Shown piece by piece: positions 797-60,982 of a stretch of DNA of 64,000 nt. This DNA is from Octopus sinensis (Eukaryota). The position numbers and the translations under genes were made by a program. The notes under the pieces are model-generated. The model worked only from the letters and a program-made list of their open reading frames with translations, ran no database searches and was not told the DNA's origin. The stretch lies in contig NC_043009.1 of assembly GCF_006345805.1 (NCBI RefSeq), positions 54,684,001-54,748,000 of the forward strand, written 5' to 3'. Each line of letters opens with the position of its first letter. Position 1 is the stretch's first letter.

Positions 797-3058
797 TTAA
801 TTTGAAAAGTTACCTTCCAATTTTTTCTTCATTCGTTCACGACCCACATCATCATCATGTTTCCGTTTACTCTGCAAGGTACTTACATTGTCAGGATCAT
901 CATCAGTAGTTATGTTACTTTCCGATGGCGCTTGGCTTTCCATTATTCTGGCATTGCCAGCCATTTCCTCTTGGCTCTCTACCACATTTATATTACCCTC
1001 CCACTCTTTCTTGGTCTCCATTATGCTTCTGTCATCACCCCTCTCATCTTGGCTCTCCATTCCTCTCACATCACTATCCATCTCTCCTTGACTCTCCACT
1101 ACATTTGTGTTGCAAGCTGTCCCTTGATTTTCCACCTCATTTGCATCACAGTCAGCCTCTTCCTGACTCTCTACTTCATTTGTGACACAAGCAGTCTCTT
1201 CTTGACTTTCCACCACATTTGTGTCATTAGCTGTCTCTTCTTGATTCTTCATAGCACTCATATCACCTGCCATCTCTTCTTGATTTGTCATTAATATTTT
1301 GCCACAAGTCATCTCTTCCTTGCTCTCCACTACTCCATCAATATCTGTTACCTCTTTGGTCTCCCATATATTTGTATCATCATGTATGTTCTTTTTGCTC
1401 TCCTTAGCATTTGTTCCACAATCCCTCCCTTTACTCTCTCCCATATTTGTGTCATCAGTTATTTCTCCTTTGCTCTTCCTTACATTTGTATCTTCATAAA
1501 TTTCCTCTTTGTTTTCCCCAATATTTTTGTCATCATAAATCTCCTCTTTGCTCTCCTCTACATTTGTATCTCTAGCCAACAGCTTTCTGTTTTCCATTGC
1601 ATCCAAGTTATCTGATGTCTTTTGAAACAACATCTCTCTTTCACTTTCTTGTTTATACAGCACAAATTGAGTATCATCTTCCAAGTTCTGATTTGGTGAC
1701 ACAAGTCTTGAGTCACCCTCAGCTTTTTTATTTTGCCTGAAGGGCACATTACCTTGTTTGCTTTGCAAATTGCTTTCACCACCTTGCTCACTCTTCATAA
1801 GTGACACATCACCCTCAACATTCTGCACAAGAGACACATCATCTTTAGCCTGTTTCACAAGTGACACATCTCCTTCCCGCCCTTGCCTAACTTGAATGAG
1901 TGACACTTCATTTTCAGCTCCCTGCAAGAGTGGTAAATCATCTCCAGCCTCATGTATGCTGTCCCTTTCAGCTTCCTGTTTAGATTGTGCATCATCTTGT
2001 TTACTCTGTGAGAAACACACATCCACAGATTTACTTTGGGAAGAGGCAATACCTTCAGAACAGCTATCTTTACTTTTTCTCTCCAGTTTTACATTGCACT
2101 CTCCATTTTCTATCACATCTGTACATGTCTTATTATTTACAACATCTTGCTTACACTCTGAAAGGTCTACATCTTCTACTATGGCTTTGACTTCACACAA
2201 AGCCAGCTGCACACCACTCTTAGCAGCAAGCAAGCTATCTGAAAGTCCAGTATAGTCTGCTGTAACCTTCATACTATCCGTGAATTCCATATCTTTCTGA
2301 TTTTTGTTAGCATAAGTATTGGTTAAAATATCTTCATTCTCTATTTTCACATCATCAGTATTTCTAACTGAAAGTTTAGAATCAAAACGTGCCTTTTCTC
2401 CAGTTGCATCCAAGCCCCTATTACTTTCCTGGGCATCTAAAACTTTACTTTTACGGTCAATGTTTTCCATTTTCACTTCAGATTGTACTACAGAATCTTC
2501 TCTTCCAAAATTACAAACTTCATTTAAGTATTCTATCGTATTGATGGTATAGTCTTGTACAGAACACTCAGAAGTCACTTCAATGTTTTCATTCAATATA
2601 CATGACCCGGATTCTAACAAACCAGATAATTTAAAAGCTTCACAATCATCTGGATTGGAAACTTGCAGATTTTGTATACTTTTTGCTATCAATTCTTTGG
2701 CCTCAGCAAGTTTTTCTTCAAATTCATTCAATAGTTTGACTGTTTGACACTTTTGCTTCATCATCATCATTCGTAATGTTTCCCGGGCCTGATTTGGTCG
2801 GATTTCATTGATAAGATGATTGAGGTTTATGAATAGTAAACGCAGGTCATTCAGTTTTTCTTGCCTATCTGAAGAGTTGGGGTTCCGAATAAGTATGTCT
2901 ATCAAATCTAGAAAGCACACAAGAATGGAATGGTTCAGTTTCTTCATTTCCTTTTTACGATTATGGTTTTCAGGATATAACTGTGTAAGTCCTAGGGATT
3001 CTAATGTCTGAATGGGATCATTAATGTTGGAAGGTACACCAAATACTGTGTAGTTCTC
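797..3058 (-). CDS. MED7: MED7-like, coding exon 2: MED7 domain plus a long acidic low-complexity tail (753 aa, stop TAA 797-799)
   Basis: Acceptor TTTTTTTGCAG at 3059-3060, phase 0, in frame with exon 1. KKEMKKLNHSILVCFLDLIDILIRNP..RQEKLNDLRLLFINLNHLINEIRPNQARETLRMMM matches the MED7 core (human [61 protein letters not shown], from recall). The frame is open for 2.26 kb. Confidence 0.9.
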   Translation of the reverse strand, partial: ENYTVFGVPSNINDPIQTLESLGLTQLYPENHNRKKEMKKLNHSILVCFLDLIDILIRNPNSSDRQEKLNDLRLLFINLNHLINEIRPNQARETLRMMMMKQKCQTVKLLNEFEEKLAEAKELIAKSIQNLQVSNPDDCEAFKLSGLLESGSCILNENIEVTSECSVQDYTINTIEYLNEVCNFGREDSVVQSEVKMENIDRKSKVLDAQESNRGLDATGEKARFDSKLSVRNTDDVKIENEDILTNTYANKNQKDMEFTDSMKVTADYTGLSDSLLAAKSGVQLALCEVKAIVEDVDLSECKQDVVNNKTCTDVIENGECNVKLERKSKDSCSEGIASSQSKSVDVCFSQSKQDDAQSKQEAERDSIHEAGDDLPLLQGAENEVSLIQVRQGREGDVSLVKQAKDDVSLVQNVEGDVSLMKSEQGGESNLQSKQGNVPFRQNKKAEGDSRLVSPNQNLEDDTQFVLYKQESEREMLFQKTSDNLDAMENRKLLARDTNVEESKEEIYDDKNIGENKEEIYEDTNVRKSKGEITDDTNMGESKGRDCGTNAKESKKNIHDDTNIWETKEVTDIDGVVESKEEMTCGKILMTNQEEMAGDMSAMKNQEETANDTNVVESQEETACVTNEVESQEEADCDANEVENQGTACNTNVVESQGEMDSDVRGMESQDERGDDRSIMETKKEWEGNINVVESQEEMAGNARIMESQAPSESNITTDDDPDNVSTLQSKRKHDDDVGRERMKKKLEGNFSN

Positions 3059-3341
3059 CTGCAAAAAAACAAGAAAAACGCTTGTAAAAATAATTATTTC
3101 TATATAGGTACAGGCATGGCTGTGTGGTTAAGAAGCTCACTTTTGCAACCATGTGGTCTCAGGTTCAATCCCATTGTGCAGAGCCTGCACCATACTTCTG
3201 TATCTGTTTTGGTATGGGTTTTTTATGATTGGATTCCCTTCCAAATACCAACCACTCCACTGAATAGGCTGAGTGCTTTTTACTTGGCATTCCATATTAT
3301 GGAAGTATTACATTCAAGAAAATCATGCATTAACAGAGTTC

Positions 3342-3789
3342 TGTAGAGTGGTACATGTTTTCCGATTTTTATGTTCATTGATTTACATCTAATCTAAAGG
3401 CAATGGTAATGTCGCGGCACAAACATCCAGTACCATATTAGGTGAGATCTCGCGGAAGCCATTGCCATCTCCGAGACTGGAGCGAGACCTCACCTGCATC
3501 CATTTGTCATGCATGAGATCATGAGGCTCGCAATGGAGAAAACTATATAAATGGGAAACTTATTCAGACCAGCCTCTTTTGGCGCCATTAGACAGCAGCA
3601 TTGGCTGAACACCAACACAGGCAGCACTTTCTGCTTGTCTATCTCCAGAGGCAATGTACCCGTACCCTGTCGGAGCTTAAGATGGTAGCTGTGAGCAGCA
3701 CACTTCTCTCTTTCCTGTAAATAAACCAGTTGTAAATAGCATTTATGCTTGAAGTCTTTTTTCTTTGCCTGCCGAAAGCCTGAACTACA
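3342..3789 (+). mobile_element. Putative solo LTR inside the MED7-like coding intron
   Basis: TGTAG...CTACA termini, TATATAAA at 3544-3551, AATAAA at 3720-3725, higher GC than flanks. No clean TSD. Confidence 0.45.
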
Positions 3790-3989
3790 TAAAGAACAAG
3801 AAAAAGATGATGGAAAAAGATGATATTCCTCCCATATCATAAACCCTGCCTTCCTAAAGTAAAATAGGTTTCATGCTACAGAAAACATTACAGCAAGATT
3901 TTTCAGGAGTGCAATGCTTTCATAATATACAGACAATGTCAGTATAAACTTATTTTGTCTATCCACCCATTTATCAGTGCCTGCTATCC

Positions 3990-4205
3990 CTAAGAGGTTT
4001 ATAGGGATTAGAGTCCCCAGGTACCTCCTTGATTGGGTCCTATCAGAAACAACTGTCATTACACATTCTGGCTGAATTCCCAAGAGTGACCAACAAAGAA
4101 TATGGATATCATCCAACCATCTTGCTTTTTCTTTAACCCTAGGCCTCTCCCTGCCAGTCTGCTCGATCCTTCTCATGATCCATCTCTCAAGTATTCTAAT
4201 CACAT
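3990..4205 (-). mobile_element. Decayed RTE-like LINE 3' remnant
   Basis: Translation ILE..I.....GRERPR....RWLDDI.....DRTQSR resembles the RTE ORF C-terminus. Confidence 0.4.
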
Positions 4206-4494
4206 GTCCATAGTATTGAAGCTATGACCTTTTGTGAAAAAAAAGTAGCAGTTCCACCTGAAGTGACTTCAAGCTGTGCACTCTGTCAAGCACTGTTATT
4301 CCAGAGATCCTTTGAAGAAACCCCATTTCAACTGCTTGTACTTGAATTCTACTCTTTTAATCATTACCCAACATTCATAACAATGGGTGAAAATGGGCAC
4401 AGAAACTGAAATGAAGATAGCAAATGTGAATTATTTTTTTTTTTTTTACCAACCTCTTCTGAGGCTGATTTTGCCAATTGGAAATAAATTTTAC

Positions 4495-4605
4495 CTGGGT
4501 TGGTGGTGGTGCTGGTATTCCTTTTGCCATATTTTCATCAGTACAGTACCTCACATATTGCATGGGAGGTAAAGGGAAAGAACTAACACCAAGACGGTCA
4601 GACAT
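4495..4605 (-). CDS. MED7: MED7-like, coding exon 1 (MSDRLGVSSFPLPPMQYVRYCTDENMAKGIPAPPPTQ, 37 aa)
   Basis: Translation matches the MED7 N-terminus (PPMQY..TDEN..P.PPP). Donor CAG|GTAAAA at 4494, phase 0. An acceptor TTTTTTTCAG at 4622-4623 lies 16 nt upstream of the ATG, implying a further non-coding exon. Confidence 0.88.
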
Positions 4606-5289
4606 TTGCAGCAGGATTTTACTGAAAAAAAGATATTTTAAAGATATGAAACAATAACCAGAATCATCCAAATAATGCTAGCACGTGAATATTACCAAAA
4701 CACTTTTTTATTTGATCCTTTAATTAGATCAAAAAGGAGAGGAAAGATAGTGCCTGTAATCTGTTACAACATCCTTGTAACAGATTATGTAAGAGAGAGG
4801 AATCTCAAACTGGAAACCCTGCCCAAATGCTTGCAATAGAGTGGGTTCTGCTATAGGCACCGAGAGAAAAATGCTTCAGGGTTTAATGAAATAACTGATA
4901 AGATCTTGTCAGTCCCAAATTCACAATGCTGAAGGATACCGAAATCTGCACAGATGACTGTGAGGACATAAGGTTCGTCCTGCCCGTTCTGGAAGAACAA
5001 AGTAGCGTTTAGAAGGAACTTGTTTCTTGTTGATCAATCAGCCTACAAGCCAGAGGAAATACAAAGTCATTCTGGGGACTAATAAACTTTATTTATAGGT
5101 AACAAACCTAAAAGGGAATAACTGGTAGAAGTTGCCGCATAGGATCTTTTCACTTTGACCGGCAGATTTTTAAAATAATTTTTTGTAACCGCCAGTCAAA
5201 GTGAAAAGATCCAAAAAAGATGACCAGAGTTATAGTTGGAAAGATGGATGATTTAAATTTCCAATTCTTGTTAATTTATTTTATGCAGT

Positions 5290-6810: not shown

Positions 6811-7567
6811 TAATATGGAAAGGAATAAATGAAGCTGAAAACGCACAGAATATATAGAGATTTATTTAAATTTTAAAATAAGTATGGCTGTGCATTTGTA
6901 AGATTTTCAAAAACGTACATTAAAAAAAAAACGTGGAGTTGCATAGCAAACTGAATTGTGTGAATGTGTGCACACACACGCACCGAGTTTTACTTTCCCT
7001 CTTTGTATCACAAAAGTGAATGTACGTAGTAAATTTATCAATATAACCAGGTCGAAAATGTGTCTTCCAACAAACAACAGTCTTGCTGCTGATTATTTGC
7101 AGCTAGCTGAAGTGAGTCATCATATGTTCTATATCTTGACCCTGAACACATTACATCTGTTGTCATTTAGTCTCGTCTCACGGCACCTAAGATCAAACAG
7201 GTCTCTTTGACCAAAACTTATTCAAGCCGAAACCATATTGACTTATACTTAGTACAACGTTAGCCAATGTTTGTTTCTTTTTTACAAAACAATAATGTAT
7301 GGTTTGAGGGATATTTGTCAATTATTTCCAGCTGGTTGGGCAACCATGGAGTGATTCCCTCACTGGCTCATATAACATCATAATATACAGCCAGTAACGA
7401 TATATTACACCATAGTCGATATTCTCTTTTGCAGTCTCTATTCTTTCGCGATTTAACCAGTCAAGTTGTCACTGAATGAAACAATCTTTGTTACTGTATT
7501 TATTTTGAGATGCTCTGTTTCTTTCAACTATTTTAAATATAACAAAGAATTTAGTAAAATAACTTAA

Positions 7568-7965
7568 TCTTTATATATAAAAGTCAAGTTGTGTGTCTGT
7601 CTCCTACGATTTAGATTCCTAACTACTCCCACATTTTGCGGTGCAGTGTAACCAAAAGCGGGTATCTTATAGTCGTGATTCATATCGAGCCCTTCTGCGT
7701 ATTAGCGCGCGTCTACGATGAGTCTACGATTTTAAAAATAATTTACCATCACTTTTTTTCCATTTTAATGCATTTTTTCGCTATTATATAAGGGAAGTAA
7801 CTCTCTAAAAATGTCTACGATGAGTCAATGATTTAAAAAAAAATTTACCATCATTTTTTTCCCATTTTTAATGCATTTTTGTTGCTATTTTCTGGCTATA
7901 GCTCTAAAAATGCTTATATAGTTGTTTCCCTTACAAACCCGAGCAACGCCGGGCGATACTGCTAG
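7568..7965 (+). mobile_element. Non-autonomous Helitron, family 1, copy 1
   Basis: 5' TC, 3' hairpin CCCGAGCAACGCCGGG followed by CTAG, inserted between A and T, no TSD. Confidence 0.85.
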
Positions 7966-8438
7966 TTATCATTAATCTAGAGTTAGGAACGTAAATTGTG
8001 ACTAAGGCTTGGCGGAATATTTTAATTCAAAACTTATGATAACAAGACATTTTACCACAGAGCCAGAGCCGGTTTTGGCCGGGTTAACGAACATTGAACT
8101 GAATTTCCAATTAACAGAACACACGATCAGTTCTACAGTTCCATTTATTTAAAGAAAAAGAATTACTTAAAATCTCTGGTTATAGTATTGTCTTCCGTAA
8201 TCGCATTAACGTTGCCTTATATGTAAATTAAACGGAGGGTAGGCTGTATACATCTACTATAATTATGTACTAGTGTAGAGACCGCTTTCTTTCTCTTTTT
8301 TTGTCTTTCTTTTTGTACTATACAGGCATCATATGCATACGTGTTATATATGTAATAAAATATTTTCTTTGTTGATATAATAAATTACTGATGAATGGAA
8401 AGAGGTGGTCTTGGTTTTATTCCCGTCCGCGATATAAA

Positions 8439-8833
8439 TCTTTATATATAAAAGTGAAGTTGTGTGTCTGTCTCCTACGATTTAGATTCCTAACTACTCC
8501 CACATTTTGCGGTGCAGTTTAACCAAAACCGGGTATCTTATAGTCGTGATTCATATCGAGCCCTTCTGGGTATTAGCGCGCGTCTACGATGGGTCTACGA
8601 TTAAAAAAAAAATTTACCATCATTTTTTTCCATTTTAATGCATTTTTTCGCTATTATATAAGGGAAGTAACTCTCTAAAAATGTCTACGATGAATCAACG
8701 ATTTAAAAAAAAATTAACCATTTTTTTTCCATTTTTAATGCATTTTTTTGCTACTTTTTGGCTATAACTCTCTAAAAATGCTTATATAGTTATTTCCCTT
8801 ACAAACCCGAGCAACGCCGGGCGATACTGCTAG
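8439..8833 (+). mobile_element. Non-autonomous Helitron, family 1, copy 2
   Basis: Near-identical to 7568-7965, with the same TC/CTAG ends and A|T site. Confidence 0.85.
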
Positions 8834-9053
8834 TAAAATATAAAGGTTTTCCTATATAGTAAGAAACGCAAAAAAAACAAGCGACGAAGAGTTTGCATCT
8901 CCTTGTAACTTCTCAGTTTTGACCTTTTGTTTTCGAATATTTATTCAGGTTAACGTAACGCATGTTTTTTGAAGACTCAAGAACTTGAAAAATTCTTCAA
9001 AAATCATAATCCACAATGCTTGAAACATACACTTGGCTTTTGAAGTACTGGAT

Positions 9054-9765
9054 CAGCGGCTCACAACTGGAGGCCATATGATCCTTGGGGGTCCAGATAA
9101 GAATTTATGTGCAGTAAATTGGATCCAATTTGGATCTTTTCGCTTTGACCGGCAGATTTAAGTAATTTCTTTGTAACTAAACACTTTTAAACTTCGTATA
9201 CTGGTAGAATGTGTTACATAAAACATCTTTTTCTCTTGGCTTTGAGAAAATTCTGTAGTTTGTAAGCTATTTGTTGTTTAATTTCTTGCTTTTCGACAAT
9301 TATATTTGTACAATACACAAAGTATTTTAACAATTTTTTTTATACAATTCCGAATAATATTGAATTATAAAGATATAATAGAATATTTTTTTTTAAACAT
9401 TGAACGGATATGAGGGTCCACTCGAGTAAAATAAGAATCAAAGGGGGCGAAAATAAAGAATACGTACACCCAGTGTTTAGGGTTAGGGCTATTGTTACGC
9501 CGAAAACGGGTGGTGTACGTATTATTTACCTTTGCCTCAAAGTGGTCCATAGGCAAAAATTTTTTTTTAAATGGTTGAGAAACGGATATGAGGGTCCACT
9601 CAAATAAAATAGGAATCAAAGGGGGCGAAAATAAAGAATACGTACACCCAGTGTTTAGGGTTAGGGCTATTGTTACGCCGAAAACGGGTGGTGTACGTAT
9701 TATTTACCTTTGCCTCAAAGGGGTCCATAGGCAAAAATTTTTTTTAAAATGGTTGAGAACCGCTG
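9054..9765. mobile_element. hAT-like MITE with a tandemly duplicated 178-bp subterminal unit (9403-9758)
   Basis: CAGCGGCTCACAAC ... GGTTGAGAACCGCTG ends. Two copies of a 178-bp unit. A related element lies at about 55628-56313. Confidence 0.55.
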
Positions 9766-25722: not shown

Positions 25723-25903
25723 TTATTCAGTTTTCTCTTCATTCTTGGTTGATTTCTTAGGTGAAGAATCGGGGTACTGCACAGACATGGGTACTCTAGA
25801 AAGCAAAAGAATGTGACGCTCATATGCAGGACTGGCACGGAACAGATTATCGGTGCCATGAAGACGATCAAGGACTCCGAGAATGCCATAGTTTTGGTTG
25901 AAC
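25723..25903 (-). CDS. FAXDC2: FAXDC2 coding exon 6 (K-FNQNYGILGVLDRLHGTDNLF...AYERHILLL...EKTE*)
   Basis: TATTAG acceptor. 181 nt, stop TAA at 25723-25725. NYG....LD.LHGT motif. Total CDS 1056 nt = 351 aa plus stop. Confidence 0.95.
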
Positions 25904-27215
25904 CTAATAAGAATTGAAAAAAAAAAAGCTGATTAGAATTATTGGTTTTGATGGAATGCAAATAGATTTTGGGTAAGGGAGAAGAATAACTAGATTAGAT
26001 AAATGTTTTCTACTTTAGGCACAAGGCCTGAAATTTTGTGGGAGGAAGCCAGTCAATTAGATCGACCCCAGTACTTCACTGGTACTTAATTTATCGACCC
26101 CTAAGAGGATGAAAGGCAAAGTTGACTTTGGTGGAATTTGAACTCAGAACCACTAAGCATTTCGCCCGGCATGCTAACGTTTCTGCCAGCTCACCGCCTT
26201 CTAGATTAGATAAATGTCTGTATCATACAGACATTTATTCAATTGGGATAGCTTCACTTATATACACTATTTACATCTGGCGGATATTTGTCCTCATCTT
26301 GTCTGTTGTTAAAACAACGTTTTGGCTGATATACCCTCCAGCCTTCATCGGGTGTCTTGGGGAAATTTCGAACCCAGATTCTCATTCCTAAGGTATTTTT
26401 TGATGATGATGATGTTGTTGTTGGTATTATTATTATTCAGGTCACTGCCTGGAATCAAACTCGGAATCTTTGGGTTAGTAGCCCACGCTCTTAACCACTA
26501 CGCCATATGCCCGTGTTAACGACAAACAAGATGAGGACAAACATCTGTCAAATGTAAATAATGTAAATAATGTACATAATTCCTCATCTCTTAAATATAG
26601 AACTGAACTCCAATGTCTTTCATATTTGATGGCATAAAAGACACACAGAAATATTAGACTTACCTCTATTTCAGCAAAAAGAAGTTTTTAGTGCATTAAA
26701 CTGGCACTCCAGGGGTTACAACAATGAGGGTTGTAGTTAATCTGATCAACAGAACAGCCTTCTTGTGAAATTAATGTGCAAGTGGCTGAGCACTCCACAG
26801 ACATGTGTACCCTTAATGTAGTTCTCAGAGGAAATTCAGTGTGACACAGAATGTGACAAAGCTGGTTTTTTGATTTACAGGTACAACTCATTTTTGCCAG
26901 CTGAGTAGACTGGAGCAACATGAAATAAAGTGTCTTGCTTAAGGACACATTGCACCATCAGGTTTTGAACTCATGACCTATTGCTAGTGAGCCAAATAAC
27001 CTAACCACTAAGTGACGACAAACCTTCACATGGTTAGTGCATTAAAGCATGTAAAAAAGGCCCAACTTCACATATAGGACCCAGGGTGGTTTTTTGAGAT
27101 TATCTTTGTGGGAAAATGTGGGTCTTATACACCATCAAATATGGTACTTGATTTCAACCAAAGAAATATTTTTGGGGTTAATTGCTAGAGCTTATGACGA
27201 AATTACTTTACTCAC

Positions 27216-27488
27216 TTGAGGTGATGAAAATCATGAGCTTCAGGTGATGGGAGAAAGGGGAAATGATAACCACTGTGTGCTACTGTGGTGGACAGCAAAA
27301 CCAGAGCGAACCACAGCCAAGATGTTGCCAGATGAGATCCCATAATGATGGGTCCAAGAACTGGTGGCAGCATGTTACTCATGACGTGTTCAAGTGGGTG
27401 AGCATAGACAGATACAAGGCCAACTGGAGCAGTCCATTCATGATGTATCTTGTGAACGTATTTGTATAAGGCTGGGTGATGCAGAAGT
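27216..27488 (-). CDS. FAXDC2: FAXDC2 coding exon 5 (R-LLHHPALYKYVHKIHHEWTAP...HPLEH...HSGYHFPFLPSPEAHDFHHL-K)
   Basis: TTTTCAG acceptor and AA|GTGAGT donor. 273 nt. Contains the HRLLH, HKIHH and HDFHH histidine boxes of the sterol desaturase/fatty acid hydroxylase family. Confidence 0.96.
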
Positions 27489-29606
27489 CTGAAAATAAAA
27501 ATGAAATACAATTAAATAGATTTGATTTAGAAGTTAATTATAAAAATAGATAATAGAAATTAGTTTTAAAAGTATATCATACATTTATAATATAGGATAA
27601 CACCCACCCCACTGAAAATAGGGCGATAGACACATCTCTTCTTTTTACATTATTGTTATCATCATCATTATCATTATTTTAACATCCACTTTTCCATGCT
27701 AGTATCGGTCAGAAGGAATGCGTCAAGGTAGATTTTCCATGTGCCAATGCCTTTGTTTCCAAGCCTGCTAATATTTTTACACAGCTGAATACATTTTCAT
27801 AGAAGACTGGAAATAAGGGACACTACTGATAGATGGAAATGCTCCTTTAATCCATGATATCAAGACAAAAGGCAACACACACATAGATACATAGGTACGT
27901 ATGTATGTATGTATGTATCTATGGATGGATGAATGCATATGATGGACTTCTTTCAGTTTCCATAAGCCAAATTCACTCCCAAGACTCTGATCAGCCTGGA
28001 GATATATTAGAAGACACTTGCTCTGGGCACTGAACCTGATCTCATGGTTGGAAAGCAAGCTTGTTAACCACACAGCAATACCTGCACATACGTACATATC
28101 ATCATCATCATCATGCTGGCATGGGTTGGACGGTTTGACAGGCGCTGGCCAGGCAGAAGACTGCACCAGATTTCTGTGTCTGTTTTGGCAGTTTTTAAAG
28201 CTGGATGCCCTTCCTAACACCAACCACACAGCAGAGTGGACAGAGTACTTTTTATGTTGCACAAGCACAGGAAAGGTCAGTTTTGGCATGGTTTTTACAG
28301 CTTGATGCCCTTCCAAATGCCATCCATTATACAGTGAGGACTGAATGCTTTTTAAGTGCTGTTCAAAACTATAGTCACCCAAAATATAATTTCAATTTGT
28401 CAGAATAATACCAAATTGAGAACAATGTTATTTTACTCTAAACTACTATAATGAAGTTTATTTTTGTCTTTTCTGAAACTAAATTTATTTTATATATTAT
28501 AAATGTTATTTAATAAATAAATGCTATCCAACACTAAAAAATAGGTGAAAAGAAAAAAACTGTTTCAATAAAGCAGCAGACAAAAGACTTTGGGATAAAT
28601 TCAAGTAGTATAAAATGTCTATTAAGATATGTAAAAAAATTAAATAAAATAAAGAGAAAAACTGTGAGTTTAGAAAAAAAAACAGTTTGAATATTTCAGC
28701 ACTTTGTGAGATATTTTTTTAATAGAGAAAAGAAACCTCAACTTCAAGTACATAAAGTTCATTAAAATGTCAATTTGGAACATTCTTCATCAAAAGAAGT
28801 AAAAAATAAATTGCTTAAATTCAAAATTATTTCATTTTTATGATGGGCAGTTATAAAATGTAAGAGATTCAAGTCTAGAGTCTATTAAACTTTCATGTCA
28901 GTCTTAAAGTATATAAATTCAAAGCATAAACACTTACAGGCAGGGCTGTGTGGTTAAGATGCTTGCTTTGTAACCATGTGGTTTCAGGTTCAGACCTGCA
29001 GTGCAACACTTTGGGCGAGTGCCTTCTACCACAACCCTAAACTGACCAATGCTCCGTGAGTGATTTGGTAGGCAGAAACTGTGTGGACACCACACAGAAA
29101 TTGTGTGGCAAGCTGGCAGAAACAAGGCGAAATAAGGCAGCGAGCTGGCAGAAATGTTAGCACGCCAGGTGAAATGCTTAGCAGTATTTCATCTGCCGTT
29201 ATGTTCTGAGTTCAAATTCTGCCGAGGTCGACTTTGCCTTCCATCCTTTCGGGGTCGATAAATTAAGTACCAATTATGCACCGGGGTCGATGTAATCCAC
29301 TTAATCCCTTTGTCTGTCCTTATTTGCCCCCTCTTTGTTTAGTCCCTTGTGGGCAATAAAGAAATAAGAAACTGAGTGGAAGCCCATTGCATGTGTGTGT
29401 GTGCACCTTTGTGTTTGTTGTCCATCACCACTAGACAGCCGGTGTTGGTTTGTTTATGCCCCTGTCACTTAGCAGTTTGACAAAGAGACCAACAGAATAA
29501 ATACCAAAGTACTGGGAGCAATTTGTTCAACTAAATCCTTCAAGGCAGTGCCCCAGCTTGACCAAAATCCAGTGACTGAAACGAGTACAAGGTAACAGGC
29601 ACTTAC

Positions 29607-29812
29607 CTGTGGGAGTAGTAAAATCCCAGTTCTTCAATAAGAGTGAATACGGCAATTTCCAAGAGAACCCACTGAAAGGTTGGCAGGTCTCCACTAACAG
29701 GACATCCTCTCCATTTCATAACTAAGCAAGTACAAAAGCTCATTGGCAGGGCAACAACTGTTTGGTTAAACAAAGCTCTCAGACAAATTTTCTTCAAATC
29801 CTTCATTGCAAG
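29607..29812 (-). CDS. FAXDC2: FAXDC2 coding exon 4 (LAMKDLKK...LIEELGFYYSH-R)
   Basis: TTTTCAG acceptor and AG|GTAAGT donor. 206 nt. LFNQ, LPTF, IEE..FYYSHR motifs leading into His box 1. Confidence 0.95.
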
Positions 29813-29858
29813 CTGAAAAGAGAATAAAGACATTTGAAAATAAATAGTTTATATCTAA

Positions 29859-30154
29859 CTAGCAGTATCGGCTGGCGTTGCTCGGGTTTGTAAGGGAAAT
29901 AACTATAAAGCATTTTTAGAGAGTTATAGCCAAAAAATAGCAAAAAAATGCATTAAAAATGGGAAAAAAATTATGGTAAATTTTTTTTTAAATCGTAGAC
30001 TCATCGTAGATGTGCGCTAATACCCAGAAGGGCTTGATATGAATCACAACTATAAGATACCAGGTTTTGGTTAAACTGCACCGCAAAATGTGGGAGTAGT
30101 TAGGAATCTAAATCGTAGGAGACAGACACACAACCTCTCTTTTATATATAAAGA
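29859..30154 (-). mobile_element. Non-autonomous Helitron, family 1, internally deleted copy in FAXDC2 intron 3
   Basis: Reverse complement of the 7568 element with both termini retained. Confidence 0.82.
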
Positions 30155-31280
30155 TAACAGTATGAAATTTTTCAAAATTTAAGAAATTAGTTTCCATGCA
30201 TTGTGGGGACATTTAATGTTTTAAACAAAGGTTTCTTGTCCGAGTATGAGCGATAAAGTTTTGTTGTTGTTGTTGTTGTTGTTTTGTGTGTGAATGAATG
30301 CCAATATTGCATATTCTAAAACAAATTGCAAGAAGCAAGTTAATTCTAAAAATGTTTCCTCAGTGCGGTATATCAAGTATAATAGTTATTGCACATCAAT
30401 GATGACAAATTTATTTTAGTATGTAGGGACAACAAAATTTATAATTCCTGGGTTTCGTTTAATGTTCTATTCTTCTATGCAAGCACATGTTGGATGAGGC
30501 CTTATTCATGAGGCATTATTTTACAGCTGGATGTTCTTTCTGTCACTAATCCTTCAAAATTTTTCATGCAAGGGATATTTATTCCACTTCTCTTCAAGAG
30601 CAAGAAGCTGCAGGACAATTTGTTGACAGGAGAAGTCAAAATGAAGTTGTTGCTTATAAAATTTCATGAGAACATCATAGAATGTAAGCACATACACAAA
30701 GGTAGACACACACACACAGGTTTAATATCAACATATAACTTTCACTTAAGTATTCATAGAATGTAAGCAAGCGCACAGATCATACACAGAATGGGCTTTC
30801 ATACAGATTCAATCTACTAATTTCATTCACAGAGCATTAGTCAACCTGGGGCCATATTGTCCGAGGTGTTGCACAGTGGGATTGAACCCAAAATCACATT
30901 CTTGCAAAGCAGACTTCTTAACCACATAGCTATGTCTGCATCTGTGGTATTCAATAATCACAAGAAGGATACATGTATCTAAGAGAGAAGAAGATGGTGG
31001 GGAAAAAATCTGTAACTCTGCTTGAAGTATTCAAACACAGCTGTAAACCATAAAGTGGTTTGTATCTATAAACAATGAGGCATATTTTGGCAAGTTTCAC
31101 AAATTTCCCTGTATCACCCCATCCATCCCATCACACACACACACACACACTCTCTCACTCTCTCTTTCTCCCTTACACTTCACATCAAGGGTAGAGTAGC
31201 CAGGAATATACAGAGTATTAAATCCTATTCAACTAGAAAAAGTATTTGACTAGCAATGTCATTAATTCTTTAGCGTTTAA

Positions 31281-32000
31281 ACCGGCCAGATCTGGCTCAA
31301 ATATTCTACCTGTTTTATGTTCAAACTGGCCAGACCTGGCTCAAATAGTCTACCTGTTTTATGTCCAAACTGACCAGATCTGGCTCAAATATTCTACCTG
31401 TTTTATGTTCAAACTGGCCAGACCTGGCTCAAATAGTCTACCTGTTTTATGTTCAAACTGGCCAGACCTGGCTCAAATAGTCTACCTGTTTTATGTTCAA
31501 ACTGGCCAGACCTGGCTCAAATAGTCTACCTGTTTTATGTTCAAACTGACCAGATCTGGCTCAAATAGTCTACCTGTTTTATGTTCAAACTGACCAGATC
31601 TGGCTCAAATAGTCTACCTGTTTTATGTTCAAACTGACCAGATCTGGCTCAAATAGTCTACCTGTTTTATGTTCAAACTGGCCAGACCTGGCTCAAATAG
31701 TCTACCTGTTTTATGTTCAAACTGACCAGATCTGGCTCAAATAGTCTACCTGTTTTATGTTCAAACTGGCCAGACCTGGCTCAAATAGTCTACCTGTTTT
31801 ATGTTCAAACTGACCAGACCTGGCTCAAATAGTCTACCTGTTTTATGTTCAAACTGGCCAGACCTGGCTCAAATATTCTACCTGTTTTATGTTCAAACTG
31901 GCCAGACCTGGCTCAAATAGTCTACCTGTTTTATGTTCAAACTGGCCAGACCTGGCTCAAATATTCTCCCCTGTTTTATGTCCAAACTGACCAGATCTGG
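31281..32000. repeat. 44-bp minisatellite, about 16 copies, in FAXDC2 intron 3
   Basis: Unit CCTGTTTTATGTTCAAACTGGCCAGACCTGGCTCAAATAGTCTA, contiguous, no spacers. Confidence 0.95.
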
Positions 32001-32018
32001 CCCCTCACACCACTTACC

Positions 32019-32420
32019 TACTCTTTTACTCATTTTACTTGTTTCAGTCATTTGACTGCGGCCATGCTGGAGCACCGCCTTTAGTCGAGCAAATCGACCC
32101 CGGGACTTATTCTTTGTAAGCCCAGTACTTATTCTATCGGTCTCTTTTGCCGAACCACTAAGTGACGGGGACGTAAAACACCAGCATCGGTTGTCAAGCA
32201 ATGCTAGAGGGACAAACAAAGACACACAAACATACACATACATACATATATATACATATATACGACAGGCTTCTTTCAGTTTCCGTCTACCAAATCCACT
32301 CACAAGGCATTGGTTGGCCCGAGGCTATAGCAGAAGACACTTGCCCAAGATGCCATGCAGTGGGACTGAACCCAGAACCATGTGGTTGGTAGGCAAGCTA
32401 CTTACAACACAGCCACTCCT
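32019..32420 (-). mobile_element. SINE family A, full length (CORE-like, (AAAAGAGT)n tail)
   Basis: GGCTGTGTGGTAAG head, GGTTCAGTCCC B-box-like, CTTGGGCAAGTGTCTT core. Other copies about 20285-20655 +, 40480-40840 -, 48080-48460 -, 51175-51510 -, 52651-53045 +, 54910-55280 -, 55718-56140 -, 57555-57790 +, 59447-59870 +. Confidence 0.85.
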
Positions 32421-32636
32421 ACAATATTATTCTAAAAATAAACACATCATTGAAATTTCAAAGCTACAAGATAATGCACAACTAATTAAAACTGATGTGA
32501 ATAAATAAGCATTACACTAGGCAAAGTAATTTGAATACTAAAGGGCTAAACCAGAACGTTTCAGGGTGCAAATAATATACGGGATTAAGTTTGGATACTA
32601 AACAAGGGCATTTAAGTTCATTTGCATAATACTTAC

Positions 32637-32758
32637 CGGGGTATTTTTATCAGGCTGGACTTTGTAGCGCAACAATGACGAAGGCATACCAGTGACATCC
32701 AAAAATATAAGAAAACTGTTTGCCAACCAAAATACCGTAAATGTAAACATAGTTGTTC
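32637..32758 (-). CDS. FAXDC2: FAXDC2 coding exon 3 (G-TTMFTFTVFWLANSFLIFLDVTGMPSSLLRYKVQPDKNTP)
   Basis: TATTTCAG acceptor and CCG|GTAAGT donor. 122 nt with phases 1/0. D.TG.P....RYKVQ..KN.P motif. Confidence 0.93.
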
Positions 32759-32941
32759 CTGAAATAACGAAGGTGGTTAGAGAAATAAATAAATATATAA
32801 CTCATCATGGCATATATTATTTGCTTAGGAGGGTGCAAACCCAGGTCTGAAATTTTTTACAATTTTTCTTTTTATACCCTCTAGTTTCAGCTCAGAGCTG
32901 TGGCCATGCTGATGCACTGCCGTTTTGCTATACTGTTATTA

Positions 32942-33290
32942 CTAAGAGCCTCCTCTAATATGTGGCACTTGGTGAAGCATGGAGTTTGATATAGCTACCC
33001 TCATTTGCACCTCTTGCCGTGAGGTAGGTTCATCTGGGACTCTCGACAGGAAGAGGTCCAGCTTTGATTTAAAAACCCCTACATCTACTTTGTGAAAGTT
33101 CCTCAGACTCTTTGGAAGAATATTAAAAAGCTGTGGGCCCTTGAAACCCAGGCTGTTGCAGTAACTGGTCCTGAAGCATGATGGCATTACTGGGACCTTT
33201 GGCACTATGCAGTGTTGTCCCACTCTGGCATTGGTATAGCTTTCAATGCCAAAATTTGGCACAATTCCTTCCAGTATCTTCCAAATATAT
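32942..33290 (-). mobile_element. CR1/L2-clade LINE 3' end in FAXDC2 intron 2
   Basis: NSLGFKGPQLFNILPKSLRN......FKSKLDLFLSRVPDEP....SNS is a typical ORF2 C-terminus. Confidence 0.75.
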
Positions 33291-34899
33291 ATTACTGCAT
33301 ACCCGTAAAAAATCTGTAAAATTTAAGAGTGTGTGCTTACACCCCCATGCAACCCCTGTTCCCAGGCTTTTGTTTCATAGATTTCTAAGAACAGAATTCT
33401 CACCAATAGAAGTTATAGCAGTCACAAAAATTAAAAAAAAAAGTAAAGATAGTCATTAAAAAACACTGATTAATTTTTAAATTGTTACTAACATCTATAC
33501 CTGTTGACAACCTCCACCATATACGTGTGTGTGTGTGTGTACACACTCATACAACAAAACCTCTATACACTAGAAACCCCTAAATAAGTATTATTCTTAC
33601 CAGAATTATCCTAGCTCAATCTTGTAAATATATACAGTCTGACTCTCACCAAGCCTATATTTATCTGTAAATATATACACTGACCCTAACCCGGTCTATA
33701 CACACACACACACACATATATATATATATCCGTAAATATATACATTTCGACTTTAGCCCAGTCTATATGTAACCTTAAATACCTGAAATTTGACTCTAGT
33801 CTAGTCTATAATATAACTGTAAATATATGCAGTCTGACTCTAACCAAGCTTATTGAAACACAGCCACCACATGAACGCAAGTATCACTTAGCACAGGTAC
33901 CATATTTTAACTAATTGTTATAAGTACCCATGTAGGCAAAAAGCAGACATAGATACATACTTCGTCTCACCATCCATGTCTCAGCAGAACAGCCAAGATG
34001 TGACAGCTGAAGGGAAAGAAGTTGCTGGGCCTTCATTTCATGAAACCAATATCAAGTTGTTTTTTAAACTTTTTTTAATGATAGAACTTAAAGTAGATAA
34101 AACTATGTGGTAAGAAGCTTGTTTCTCAACCACACAGTTCTGCATTCAGCCCCGCTGCATGGCAGCACCTTGGGCAAGTGTCCTCAGCTGTAATAACCTT
34201 GAGCCAACCAAAATTTTGAAAGAGGATTTGGTAGACAGAAACTGAAAGAAGCCCGTCATATATATATATATTTGCCAGACCCGTCTGGCACCTGTACCAG
34301 TGGCACGTAAAAAGCACCCACTACACTCACGGAGTGGTTGGCGTTAGGAAGAGCATCCAGCCGTAGAAACATTGCCAGATCAGACTGGGCCTGGTGCAGC
34401 CTTCTGGCTTCCCAGACCCCAGTTGAACCGTCCAACCCATGCTAGCATGGAAAGCGGACGCTAAATGATGATGATGATGATGATTTATTCCATGTACAAA
34501 GCAACCATGCTGGTGACATGTATAAAGCACTCTCTGCATTCTGTAAAGTGGTTGGCATTAGGAAGGGCATCCAGTCACAGAAACCATGCCAAAACAGACA
34601 ATTGAAACCTGGTGCTGTTCTCCGGCTTGCCAGCTCCTGTCAAAACTGGCCAACCCATGAGAGCATGGAAAAACAGACTTTAAATAATAATGATGATGAT
34701 TTACATGTTGTTATAGCTTTAGCCATTTCAAGTTCCATCATTGAAAAAGAAACCATTTCATGTCTCTTGAAGTTTCTACCTTCTTATCTAGTTTATTGTT
34801 TCATAACAGAAAGAAAAAAGAAATAAGCTTTTGAGCCCTATAAAGATTTGCCCAGCCCCACCCACCACCATCTGTCAAAATTCACATCAATGAACTTAC

Positions 34900-35003
34900 C
34901 TACAACACCAACTAACATTTCATCTTCATTGAACAAACTATAGATGTTGTTCCATGTTGTTTGCCAAAAGTCTCCAGAAGCACCCCAAAATCTTTGCATG
35001 TGC
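34900..35003 (-). CDS. FAXDC2: FAXDC2 coding exon 2 (W-HMQRFWGASGDFWQTTWNNIYSLFNEDEMLVGVV-G)
   Basis: TTTTCAG acceptor and G|GTAAGT donor. 104 nt with phases 2/1 consistent. The HxQRFWGASGxFWQ motif is characteristic of FAXDC2. Not in the ORF track. Confidence 0.93.
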
Positions 35004-35299
35004 CTGAAAAGTGTTTCACAGTTTCATAAGTCAGAGAATGAAGAGAAAACAGAAAAGCAAAAACATACATAAAGTGATATCAAGAATAACTAGAATAAGA
35101 GTGTGTGTGGATAGACTAACATACATTCAGCCTTGCTGCATAGATGAAAAAAAAAAAACCTTGTGATTAAAGCACAGGGCTTTCTCTGTAGAATGAACCA
35201 AATTTGGCTTATTTTGTTTAGTTAGAAGGGAGTGTCGAAAAGTTCCTGGTTTTGGGTAAATAAAATACAGGCGGATCAGTTAATTGTGATTTTATTCAA

Positions 35300-35688
35300 T
35301 GGCTGTGTGGTAAGTAGCTTGCTAACCAACCACATGGTTCCGGCTTCAGTCCCACTGTATGGCATCTTGGGCAAGTGTCTTCTGCTATAGCCCCGGGCCG
35401 ACCAATGCCTTGTGAGTGGATTTGGTAGGCGGAAACTGAAAGAAGCCTGTCGTATAAATGTATATATATATATGTATGTGTGTGTCTGTGTTTGTCCCCC
35501 TAGCATTACTTGACAACCGATGCTAGTGTGTTTATGTCCCTGTCACTTAGTGGTTCGGCAAAAGAGACCGATAGAATAAGTACTGGGCTTACAAAGAATA
35601 AGTCCCGGGGTCGATTTACTCGACTAAACGCAGTGCTCCAGCATGGTCGCAGTCAAATGACTGAAACAAGTAAAAGAGTAAAAGAGTA
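35300..35688 (+). mobile_element. SINE family A, full length, inserted into a mariner MITE in FAXDC2 intron 1
   Basis: Same family as 32019-32420, opposite orientation. It splits the MITE whose intact form is at 15495-15719. Confidence 0.85.
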
Positions 35689-35981
35689 TTCCCCTCTCAG
35701 ATTCACACACTTATTGCAGCAGTCCTTCAGTTACTCTAACCCCTCTAAAAGATCTTGGAATGTTGGGCCTCCAACAAGGGCCTTTTGCAATACCCTAAAA
35801 GCCAGGAACTTTTCAGCAGCCCCTCGTATTGCTGCTTTACTTTGTAGAGTTACTTGTAAAAAATTCTACAAATGATAGACTCTTATTTTAGTCGGTTTCA
35901 TATCAGTATATTGGCTAGCAATGCATGAATTGTAAATGTGATTTTATGTTCCATTTGCATCAATTTTTATCTAGACTGCAG

Positions 35982-36612
35982 CTGTTCTGAAGGGTTCTGT
36001 TTAATGTGTCGAAGGCTCCCTTGTGGGCCATAGTACACTCGTCCCACGCAATAAGCTGACAGTGTTTCAGCATTTGGACCTGGTCAGAGTTCTTGCTTAT
36101 ATTGCAGGTAGGTGTTTTGACTTAGTTAAATTGAGGGGCAACTTAAAGGTGGAGAGTGAAGTTCTGTTGCCAGGCAGCAAAGTTACAGCAATCCCCAAAG
36201 ATGCGACCGCAACTGCAAAGCTCTTTTGCATCAAAGCTCTTCGCTAGGATGAGCTCCATTAGAAAGGTTTTGCCTGTACCTCCTGGAGGATCAAGAAAAA
36301 AACAAACCACCTTTCAGTCACAATAGTATAAACATGCCATTGAGTCAGAAGAAGCTTTGGTTCGGTTTCTAGGACGAAACTGGCAAGGGCATCTGTGTCG
36401 TAGGACGTCTCTCGCAAAAGAGCTGTACAAAGTAAATTTGACTCTGAATGCAGCGGTTTATGCAAACCGCATGAGGGCAATTCATTCCCACTGAGTAATG
36501 CAGCTGTATTTTCAATGTCGATCGAGGCTTGATTGTATACCTCATCGCTTATACTTTCTATCCCAGGAAAAAGCAACTTTGCCTGATGTATGAAGTCCTC
36601 CGATAAGTCACC
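35982..36612 (-). pseudogene. Helitron Rep/Hel PIF1-helicase fragment, frameshifted
   Basis: LSEDF..VYNQA.IDIE; FFLDPPGGTGKTFL (Walker A, about 36263-36289); AVASLGIAVTLLPG-like motif; TPTCNISKNS..LIAWDECTMAHKGAFDTLNRTL (Walker B). Confidence 0.85.
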
Positions 36613-36787
36613 TTTAAATTTGAACCAAAAAGACTAAGGGTTGTTCAGTTCACAAATTTGCAGCATAAAAGCAAATAGAACTGGTGGTGCCCCAGTATGA
36701 CCACAGTCCAATGACTGAAACAAGTAAAAAAATTTTTTTTAAAGATAACGAAAAAGGAAGGAAAGAATCAAAAAATGATAAACCCAC

Positions 36788-36957
36788 CATGTAATAGTGT
36801 TTCTAGCTGCAGCAAATACAAGCAAAGCAGTGCCAACAACAAAAGCGGCTTTCTTTACAGACTCAAAAAGTTGTGAATAATTCATTTTCTCTGCTGGCTG
36901 ACCCCCAGGAGTTTTCTTTGCGATACAGGGTCCAGGTTTTGTGTTACAATCAGCCAT
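36788..36957 (-). CDS. FAXDC2: FAXDC2 coding exon 1 (MADCNT...AARNTIT-W)
   Basis: ATG at 36957, preceded by an acceptor TTTACAG (36962) and 4 nt of UTR. KKAAFVVGTALLVFAAARNTITW resembles the FAXDC2 N-terminal TM segment. Donor TG|GTGGGT, phase 2. Confidence 0.9.
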
Positions 36958-58614: not shown

Positions 58615-59606
58615 CACTTGACTGACCAGACCATCAGATTTTGCTACACATCGCTGGTCACAATGCGTTTGCATTGTTTTAGCCTTCGAACAATGCCACC
58701 CCGCTGGCTATGCGAGCAGGCCAACAGAAGAAAGAGTGGTGAAAGAGTACAGCAGGGATCACCACCCCCTGCCGGAGCCTCGTGGAGCTTTTAGGTGTTT
58801 TCACTCAATAAACACACACAACGCCCGGTCTGGGAATCGAAACCGCGAGTCCGCTGCCCTAACCACTGGGCCACTGCGCCTCCACATATATGTATATATA
58901 TATTGTCGGACATGAACAAACAATACAAATATGTGTTAACAAAAACACGCACACACACACACACACACACACATCATCATTTTAACACCCACTTTTTCTG
59001 CTCACATGGGCCAGATGGAATTTGTCAAAGCAGATTTTCCACTACTGGGTGCCTTTCCTGTCACCAACCCATACCAGTTTCCAAGTAAGGTAATGTTTCT
59101 CTGTGGCCAGACATGTTTATCACAGGAGAGAGATTGGAATATGAACAAGGCCTGTTCACATGCATCCAGTGTAGAAACCATACCACTGCTGGTTCCATAT
59201 AAAAAGTGCCATTGCTGGTTCCACGTAAAAAGTGCCCACGCTGGTGTCACATATAAAACACTGAGGATTGTGCCATACAAAAAGTATCCATTAAACTCTG
59301 TAAAGTGGTTGGTGTTAGGAAGAACATCCAGCTGTAGAAACCAAACCGAAACGGACACCTGGAACCTGATGCAGCTCTCTGGCTTGCCAGCTCCTGTCAA
59401 ACCATCCAACCCATGCCAGTGTGGAAAACAAACATTAAATTGTGGCAGGAGTGGCTGTGTGGTAAGTAGCTTGCTAACCAACCACATGGTTCCGGGTTCA
59501 GTCCCACTGCGTGGCATCTTGGGCAAGTGTCTTCTTCTATAGCCCCGGGCCGACCAATGCCTTGTGAGTGGATTTGGTAGACGGAAACTGAAAGAAGCCT
59601 GTCGTA

Positions 59607-59653
<47 letters not shown>

Positions 59654-60982
59654 TTGTGTGTCTGTGTTTGTCCCCCTAGCATTGCTTGACAACCGATGCT
59701 GGTGTGTTTACGTCCCCGTCACTTAGCGGTTCGGCAAAAGAGACCGATAGAATAAGTACTGCGCTTACAAAGAATAAGTCCCGGGGTCGATTTGCTTGAC
59801 TAAAGGCGGTGCTCCAGCATGGCCACAGACAAATAACTGAAACGAGTAAAAGAGTAAAAGAGAAAAAGAGTATGATGACACACACACACACACACACACA
59901 CACAGGTTTCTACACAGATTCCGCCTACTAGACATTGGTTGGCCTAGGGTTATAGGAGAAGACACTTGCCCAAGGTGCCATGCAGTGAAACTGAACCTGA
60001 AACTATGTGGTTGTAAAACGAGCTTCCTGGCTACACAGCCATGCCTGCACCTATGTATGTATGCATGTGTGTGTGTGTTTTGATGGATTGTAAACCAAAT
60101 GGATATTAATATGTAGAAGTAGAAAGATTCATGAGGCAGAACTGAGACACAGACAAGCGGGCAGGCAGACACACAGACTGAAAGACAGACAGACTGACTG
60201 ACTGACTGACAGAGACAGACAGATACACGAACAGGCAGACACAGTGTCAGACACAGAGACAGACAAAAACAGACAGGCAAACACAGATACACACACACAG
60301 ACAGACTCAAACAGACACACTGACAGACAGACAGGCAACGATGGAACTGGATATTAATAACTTATAAGCACATGGTATTTCATTATGCAATGTTTTATAA
60401 GTCAATACCTATTTCTTTACTACCCACAAGGGGCTAAACACAGAGGGGACAAACAAGGACAGACATTAAGGTATTAAGTCGATTATATCGACCCCAGTGC
60501 ATAACTGGTACTTAATTTATCGACCCCGAAAGGATGAAAGGCAAAGTCGACCTCGGCGGAATTTGAACTCACGTAACGCAGACGAAATACCGCTAAGCAT
60601 TTCGCCCGGCGTGCTAACGTTTCTGCCAGCTCGCCGATAAGTCAATACCATGTACTACTGTGTTAGCAGTGCACTTAAATCACGTGTTAAGGTCATCCCT
60701 ACAGATTTTCTATGGAAATTATAGCCTTCAAAACATTAAAACAAAATCAGTGCTAGCCATAATTTCTATAAAAATTTTGTAGAGATGACCGTAACACCTG
60801 ATGGAACTGGGTATTAGGGACTACGAGTTACATTAAGGTTCATGAGGTGAGATTTGGGGAAGGTGGGACTAGATGCTATACGGAAAAAAAAAGTTTTAAA
60901 CAATTTTATTCTCTATCACTCATTCTCTGTCATTTGACGCTATCAGAAATTACATAGTCTGTGAACCTCTGTGTGTGTGTGT

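Follow-up and report, generated by a model that had tools for sequence, protein, structure and literature searches.

A long MED7 paralogue with an acidic, repeat-bearing tail in octopods

The window analysed here is a stretch of 64,000 nt of Octopus sinensis chromosome CM016871.1. It contains, at ~54.68 Mb and on its minus strand, a gene for a 790-amino-acid (aa) protein in which a MED7 domain is followed by a long acidic tail. MED7 is an essential hinge subunit of Mediator. The gene, called MED7L below, is a protein-coding, cephalopod-lineage paralogue of MED7, found at least in Octopodidae and Argonautidae, and it is very probably a selected copy that arose by duplication at the DNA level. 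Its MED7 part is under purifying selection (dN/dS, i.e., omega, ~0.2-0.5) and its tail is weakly constrained (omega ~0.6). The long copy is real, old and unusual for a core single-copy subunit. A previous reading of the stretch (the sequence-only reading) had placed at 797-4605 a two-exon open reading frame (ORF) of about 790 aa, with MED7 in the first ~190 aa and an intact, probably disordered, acidic extension after it. Its coordinates are exact and the product is identical to RefSeq XP_036364255.1 («uncharacterized protein LOC118765816»); its view of the two parts is borne out by the results given below.

The spliced coding sequence has 2373 nt and is interrupted by one phase-0 intron. Coding exon 1 (4495..4605, minus strand; aa 1-37, i.e., 37 codons or 111 nt) begins with the ATG at 4605-4603 and holds the proline-rich stretches FPLPPMQY and PAPPPTQ; it was delimited by tblastn with O. 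vulgaris and canonical proteins, and ends in phase 0 as does that of canonical MED7. The intron (3059..4494, minus strand; 1436 nt) is of the GT...AG type, with its donor GT at 4494-4493 (GTAAAA) and its acceptor AG at 3060-3059 after a polypyrimidine tract; it contains repeat-derived sequence. In O. bimaculoides the corresponding intron has 1743 nt. Exon 2 (3058-797, minus strand; 2262 nt with the stop) is coding from 3058 to 800 and ends with TAA at 799-797. A polypyrimidine tract followed by an AG acceptor, ttttttcag (4622..4630, minus strand), stands 16 nt 5' of the ATG and is also found in O. bimaculoides. An acceptor at or just before the ATG is present as well in the long orthologue of Argonauta and in three canonical MED7 genes, which indicates an upstream non-coding exon in both paralogues. 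Public gene models exist (RefSeq XP_036364255.1, ENA CAI9732019.1 and a fused model, CAI9732018.1, described below; also in UniProt). The long copy is thus already annotated in databases, as «uncharacterized protein» or automatically named MED7; it is unannotated in Argonauta.

The supposition of a lineage-specific duplicate is confirmed by the presence of a canonical MED7 of 219 aa in the same genomes. It is one and the same protein in O. sinensis (XP_029644127.1) and O. bimaculoides (XP_014782169.1), and carries the motif HHLINEFRPHQARE and the C-terminal LDKIMCDIVD. In O. sinensis the canonical gene adjoins BBS7 at 56.27 Mb of CM016871.1, i.e., 1.6 Mb from the long copy; in O. bimaculoides both genes also lie on one chromosome, 7.9 Mb apart. 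The phase-0 intron falls at the homologous place in the two copies (canonical ...PPPPIQ|DSYMMFG, long ...PPPTQ|ENYTVFG). The same intron, the acceptor at the ATG of both copies and the common chromosome argue for a duplication at the DNA level and not for a retrocopy. The tail is not a general feature of molluscs: the other mollusc MED7s have 217-222 aa without any tail, and MED7s of molluscs, nemerteans, arthropods and chordates together have 215-230 aa.

Long orthologues were found in three further octopods: (i) O. vulgaris CAI9732019.1, also of 790 aa, which is 96% identical and has five in-frame indels; (ii) O. bimaculoides XP_052828417.1, of 863 aa, with the same two-exon structure; (iii) a fourth octopod, on a genomic contig of Logan run SRR11869384. 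With FAXDC2 (see below) as an anchor, an unannotated long orthologue was also found in both haplotigs of Argonauta hians, 2 kb from FAXDC2 (L006, BAAFZT010000020.1, 20343-22706; L007, BAAFZT010000071.1, 19997-22652). Its exon 1 is 75% identical to that of the long copy and 50% to that of the canonical one, and the intron position is the same. The exon 2 ORF has 420 or 469 codons, the two intact haplotigs differing by one 49-aa repeat. As in Octopus, the canonical MED7 of Argonauta adjoins BBS7. The presence of the long orthologue in Argonauta means that the duplication predates the Octopus-Argonauta split. Synonymous sites are saturated between the two genera (proportion of synonymous differences, pS, 0.64-0.79), thus the long copy has been kept for a long time.

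Three side observations concern the Argonauta genes. The acceptor of the long copy stands directly before a 'TG', so that either the 5' intron apparently interrupts its ATG or translation begins at a different codon. FAXDC2 and the long MED7 are convergent there. The introns just 5' of the long and of the canonical start codons share the string TTCGGCCCTTGTGACTAATAGAGAA (L006 ~22740-22770 and L008 ~4950-4975); a repeat element shared by both and ending there is the probable reason, rather than a trace of paralogy.

In the maximum-likelihood tree (about 200 columns, one very long branch) the long copies form a single clade (support 100/100), sister to the cephalopod canonical MED7s (80/91) within the molluscs. 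The stem of the long clade measures 1.17 substitutions per site. Placing this clade outside mollusc MED7 is marginally rejected by the approximately unbiased test (p-AU 0.039). In the best tree it stands outside all four cephalopod canonical sequences, and a duplication restricted to octopods is not rejected (p-AU 0.105). Protein searches in which the full-length sequence, its N-terminal 225 aa or a profile built from four long sequences served as query, together with a HMMER scan, gave nothing beyond the Octopus-type proteins; the databases lack the Argonauta gene too, so this is no evidence of absence in squids.

The membership of the MED7 family is clear. Pfam Med7 (PF05983) matches aa 7-161 with E=5.5e-40 and 137.9 bits (cutoff 25.8), over profile positions 1-189 of 189, and the human MED7 chains of the PDB match the long copy at E=5.6e-45. 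By hhalign, aa 1-186 align to positions 3-191 of canonical MED7 with a probability of 100%. The MED7-homologous part of exon 2 (aa 38-186; 2612..3058, minus strand) was delimited by these matches and by structure prediction. The AlphaFold2 model (monomer, 39-sequence alignment) gives a predicted local distance difference test (pLDDT) of 65-93 for residues 10-185, with helices at 71-95, 102-123, 125-167 and 177-182 and, less confidently (~60), at 203-219. These predictions agree with the MED7 fold, in which an extended proline-rich N-terminal segment is followed by a long helical hairpin. In a Foldseek search of the PDB, MED7 chains of human or yeast Mediator take all of the first six places, with a probability of 1.00. 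When the tail was compared with Pfam, the sole match, to FAM24 at aa 147-194, was below threshold and was disregarded.

Beyond aa 186 the situation is less clear. MAFFT aligns aa 186-219 with the canonical C-terminus, and Argonauta retains 'D..MC' there; hhalign stops at aa 186 and so does not support a canonical C-terminal motif in the long copy. The segment aa 203-219 (SVQDYTINTIEYLNEVC; 2513..2563, minus strand) is tentatively a remnant of the canonical C-terminal LDxMMCxIVD helix, on the basis of the MAFFT alignment and of the predicted helix, and that motif is at most vestigial. MED7 homology thus extends to about aa 186, possibly to 219.

Compared with canonical metazoan MED7 (human, PDB 7EMF chain G; Octopus XP_029644127.1), MED7L shares the full Pfam domain (~47-54% identical over aa 1-186), the proline stretches near the N-terminus, the three long helices and the intron position of the octopus canonical gene. 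It differs in being a paralogue of 790 instead of 219 aa, in having the hinge motif HHLINE[FY]RPHQARE and the C-terminal LDxMMCxIVD degraded, a dN ~9 times higher and an acidic repeat tail. A canonical orthologue has about 215-235 aa and ends with LDxMMCxIVD; the long copy has neither this length nor this end, and falls in a clade of its own.

In a set of 34 canonical MED7s, 74 positions reach a conservation of at least 90%; 48 of them are retained in every long copy, 13 are altered in all and 13 in some. To the retained positions belong the prolines near the N-terminus, KKLNHS, FLDL and the helix residues L(L)F/H-L-N/R-Q-A/L-R; in the proline stretches, V7, S8, P11, P13, P14, Y17, P31 and P33 are unchanged throughout the long copies. 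MED7N binds MED31 through proline stretches, and MED7C forms with MED21 a hinge heterodimer (Baumli 2005, cited in PMC2475620). As the elements binding MED31 and MED21 are the best-kept parts of the protein, pairing with MED21 and MED31 is what has most likely been retained. Thus MED7L would pair with MED21 via the retained helices (KKLNHS.L..FLDL.DIL and LLF.N..HLIN..R..QA.E.LR) and would bind MED31 via the N-terminal proline-rich stretches, which in yeast are the MED31-binding region. It may then take the place of MED7 in a subset of Mediator complexes, or else titrate MED21 and MED31. A large acidic disordered arm would be presented at the middle-module hinge; the tail that forms it gains and loses length by in-frame changes of its tandem repeats.

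The hinge motif itself is degenerate, as had been noticed from the sequence. It reads NHLINEIRPNQARE at aa 117-130 (2780..2821, minus strand), where the predicted helix 102-123 gives way to the helix 125-167, and HHLINGQRSHQANE in Argonauta, where the substituted positions are not those of Octopus. With reference to the near-invariant HHLINE[FY]RPHQARE, the sequences are NHLINEIRPNQARETLR in Octopus and HHLINGQRSHQANETLR in Argonauta. At motif positions with a conservation of 90% or more among the 34 canonical sequences, each lineage has 3-4 substitutions. H117N and H126N are found in Octopus vs. E122G, P125S and R129N in Argonauta. Since different residues are altered in the two lineages, a relaxed constraint on the motif is suggested rather than a single shift.

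The tail (aa 220-790; 800..2512, minus strand) was recognized as an acidic low-complexity region by its composition, the AlphaFold model, the HMMER scan, omega and the in-frame indels. Over aa 219-790 (572 aa), it contains 23% Asp plus Glu and 0.9% Pro, with a net charge of -61. Nearly all of residues 221-790 have a pLDDT <50 without secondary structure, i.e., the tail is predicted to be disordered. In a full HMMER scan (1.84 billion representatives) it was matched by no protein outside its own cluster; all the 149 other matches listed cover only the MED7 part. Sites of the CK2 type ([ST]xx[DE]) are not enriched in it (22 observed vs. 19.2 +/- 3.5 in shuffles).

About 16 degenerate tandem repeats of 13 aa (39 nt), roughly E-S-Q/K-E-E-x5-N-V-V, occupy aa 541-748 (926..1567, minus strand). 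They are seen in the layout of the protein, as repeat family D1 and by Tandem Repeats Finder, which gives 39-nt arrays at 1081-1248 and 1351-1567. The copy number varies between species, O. bimaculoides having 69 extra residues in this block. The Argonauta tail can be aligned to that of Octopus only over the first ~85 residues; the remainder is made up by a 49-aa unit which is single-copy in Octopus (aa ~255-300) and is present there in 4-5 copies. It is also acidic (net charge -22 over 242 aa). In length the tail measures about 570 aa in Octopus, against 240-290 aa in Argonauta. The composition and the openness of the tail are therefore conserved while its sequence and length are not, the tail being rebuilt from different tandem repeats in each lineage. 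As for its origin, the MAFFT placement and the predicted helix 203-219 would make the tail begin exactly at the canonical MED7 stop, i.e., as a stop-loss extension. It may thus have begun as an extension past the ancestral stop codon, which is not confirmed by hhalign.

It must be noticed that MED7 also occurs in a few further long proteins among the representatives (367-589 aa), none of them with the octopus tail. One model of Trichogramma pretiosum (572 aa, «HDGF-related protein 2») contains a complete canonical MED7 located C-terminally to a low-complexity region of 350 aa; it is probably a fused gene model.

The selection acting on the two parts was estimated by the pairwise Nei-Gojobori method, on few substitutions. 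Between O. sinensis and O. bimaculoides, omega is 0.25 for aa 1-165 of the long copy (bootstrap 0.10-0.58) and 0.58 for its tail (0.39-0.92). Between O. sinensis and the fourth octopod the values are 0.48 for the MED7 part and 0.63 for the tail. The canonical copy has dN=0 and dS=0.088 between O. sinensis and O. bimaculoides, i.e., an identical protein. Over the Octopus-Argonauta span, the dN/dS of the MED7 part of the long copy is ~0.2, and its dN is 0.287 vs. 0.031 for the canonical copy (~9-fold).

Taken as a whole, the explanation that we favour, i.e., a selected MED7 paralogue which would act with Mediator partners, appears rather probable from these sequence comparisons; for the narrower claim that the long copy works inside Mediator, the chances may be put slightly below even. 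Five results weigh against this explanation. (i) Three protein searches gave no transcript-like fragment of the long copy in Logan; canonical MED7 has many. (ii) The AlphaFold monomer superposes poorly on in-complex MED7, with template modelling (TM) scores of 0.24-0.38. (iii) The upper confidence limits of omega for the tail, 0.92-0.96, are near neutrality. (iv) In the SRR11869384 contig, one nucleotide is missing from an A-run at codon 624 (~nt 2005), where the reading frame of the tail is broken; as a side observation, the same 551-aa product is found on 3 contigs. The homologous frame downstream of it is open with omega 0.47, which argues for a recent deletion or an assembly error. (v) The hinge motif, degraded differently in each lineage, and the vestigial C-terminal motif imply that canonical Mediator contacts may be weakened or lost.

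This last point leads to the alternative which survives best, that of a protein which has left Mediator. The helical module of MED7 would then serve another process, as a scaffold or for dimerisation, and function would reside in the acidic repeat tail, e.g., in binding chromatin or histones, in mimicking nucleic acids, or as part of a reproductive or rapidly evolving protein. The amino-acid rate of the long copy, 9-18 times that of the canonical one, is in line with such a departure, as are the 4% of residues and 5 indels that separate O. sinensis from O. vulgaris. The canonical C-terminal motif is lost, and 26 of the 74 near-invariant MED7 positions, including the hinge motif, are altered in some or all long copies, with differences between Octopus and Argonauta. 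However, the residues of the proline stretches to which MED31 binding is ascribed, and of the helices to which MED21 pairing is ascribed, are among the 48 positions kept in all orthologues, and an omega of 0.2-0.5 in the domain means a continued constraint on the MED7 fold. A departure from Mediator is accordingly considered unlikely, and the favoured explanation remains that of a paralogue which may still pair with MED21 and MED31.

A second alternative concerns the tail, which might be a 3' untranslated region or be spliced out, only a short MED7-like product being made; it would be open because it is built of stop-free repeats. Indeed ~40% of the tail (aa 541-748) consists of the 13-aa repeats, able to copy a stop-free unit, and the omega intervals of the tail reach almost neutral values. 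Nevertheless, the 320 non-repetitive residues (aa 220-540) are open too, and the chance of 572 codons without a stop at this base composition is ~2e-21. The other five frames hold 15-83 stops each, and the longest open frame of the window is that of the long copy, with 776 codons, i.e., threefold the next one (238). In an unguided nucleotide alignment of O. sinensis and O. bimaculoides, the indels that are multiples of 3 number 6/6 in exon 2 vs. 9/27 in the flanking non-coding DNA (5/18 in the intron and 4/9 in the 3' flank). The Argonauta tail, made of a different repeat of 49 aa, is open in both haplotigs, and in the fourth octopod the frame stays open past the apparent frameshift. A short product is thus improbable. 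The argument of the sequence-only reading that a stop-free tail points to selection on the frame is strengthened, since the ORF is kept in O. sinensis, O. vulgaris, O. bimaculoides, the fourth octopod and both Argonauta haplotigs.

A non-functional duplicate in slow decay, picked up by gene predictors, would account for the fast evolution, the degraded motif, the 1-nt deletion in one contig and the lack of annotation in Argonauta, but it is very improbable given the two-exon ORF and conserved splice sites intact in O. sinensis, O. bimaculoides and the two Argonauta haplotigs, the intact protein model of O. vulgaris and a domain dN/dS of ~0.2 across a saturated span.

The selected MED7 paralogue may be compared with known systems. 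MED7a and MED7b are a paralogue pair in Arabidopsis. In animals, Mediator paralogue pairs comprise MED12/MED12L, MED13/MED13L and CDK8/CDK19, and two MED1, MED27 or MED30 in some lineages (Bourbon 2008, PMC2475620). No MED7 paralogue is given for animals in that survey, thus MED7 is taken as normally single-copy in animals. The octopod case resembles these pairs as a duplicated subunit kept in one lineage, which suggests alternative complexes; it differs in that an essential hinge subunit is involved and that the pair is asymmetric, one copy being frozen and the other fast and extended. Tissue-specific paralogues of the general transcription machinery are known, such as the testis TAFs. A further one is Ctr9t, a Paf1C paralogue of Drosophila testis (PMC12324932). 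The likeness lies in a conserved housekeeping copy accompanied by a fast-evolving, lineage-specific copy; the difference is that those are tissue-specific, while MED7L is represented by gene models and genomic sequence.

Large disordered regions are found in other Mediator subunits, i.e., the intrinsically disordered region (IDR) of MED1, and MED15. The MED1 IDR is also mentioned in PDB titles among the Foldseek matches. In both cases a long low-complexity region is carried by a structured anchoring domain, but the tail of the long copy is strongly acidic, proline-poor, repeat-based, lineage-restricted and borne by a hinge subunit.

A retained old second copy, a relaxed motif and an acidic arm suggest that octopods have a Mediator form which is specialised or competes with the usual one. 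The alternative, possibly tissue- or germline-specific Mediator of the sequence-only reading is thus plausible, and the tail may, as was also supposed there, act in activation, in condensates or like a histone chaperone. As a more tentative proposal, which we hold to be possible with the balance against it, octopods, possibly all coleoid cephalopods, may have an alternative Mediator middle module in which MED7 would be replaced by a fast-evolving paralogue with an acidic disordered arm of 240-650 aa, used in particular tissues (nervous system or germline). If so, this would be, to our knowledge and by the literature searched, the first animal MED7 paralogue described, and core transcription machinery would have been rewired in a lineage known for regulatory novelty. 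The literature search gave no paper with the locus or protein accessions, nor with both 'MED7' and 'octopus'. Within the complex, MED7L would be a natural experiment on a disordered acidic region at the middle-module hinge and a candidate contributor to cephalopod-specific gene regulation; outside of it, it would represent the reuse of a core transcription-factor fold elsewhere.

The neighbourhood of the gene is as follows. FAXDC2, located by tblastn, has six coding exons (25726..36957, minus strand), 21 kb upstream of the long MED7 copy and on the same strand; it served as the synteny anchor. In the O. vulgaris annotation, the model CAI9732018.1 is a FAXDC2-MED7L fusion of 1126 aa, in which the last FAXDC2 exon is left at a weak internal donor, GTCTGT, and spliced onto the acceptor 16 nt 5' of the ATG of MED7L. 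Either this model reflects read-through transcription, or it is an artefact of annotation. Outside cephalopods, MED7 is flanked by a Tec-family kinase and CCDC22 in Lineus and by ANKLE2 in Argopecten, i.e., by neither FAXDC2 nor BBS7. In Lineus longissimus (OU343000.1) the adjoining gene codes for a tyrosine kinase of PH-BTK-SH3-SH2-kinase type. Human MED7 is beside ITK. The MED7-Tec kinase adjacency of Lineus and human may thus be an old microsynteny, the Octopus canonical MED7 adjoining BBS7 instead.

For the rest of the window, no match to Rfam was obtained. Intergenic tandem duplications occur at 7566-8834 and 9403-9758, with an 870-bp unit x2 (88-98% identical) and a 178-bp unit x2 (97%). 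The ORFs 3116-3346, 27777-28382 and 59002-59682 have recurring peptide strings (e.g., WLVLGR and PAPVKPSNPCQ, with related strings in 3116-3346) and no coding signal. This suggests that they are copies of one interspersed repeat, one of them within the intron of MED7L and another within an intron of FAXDC2.

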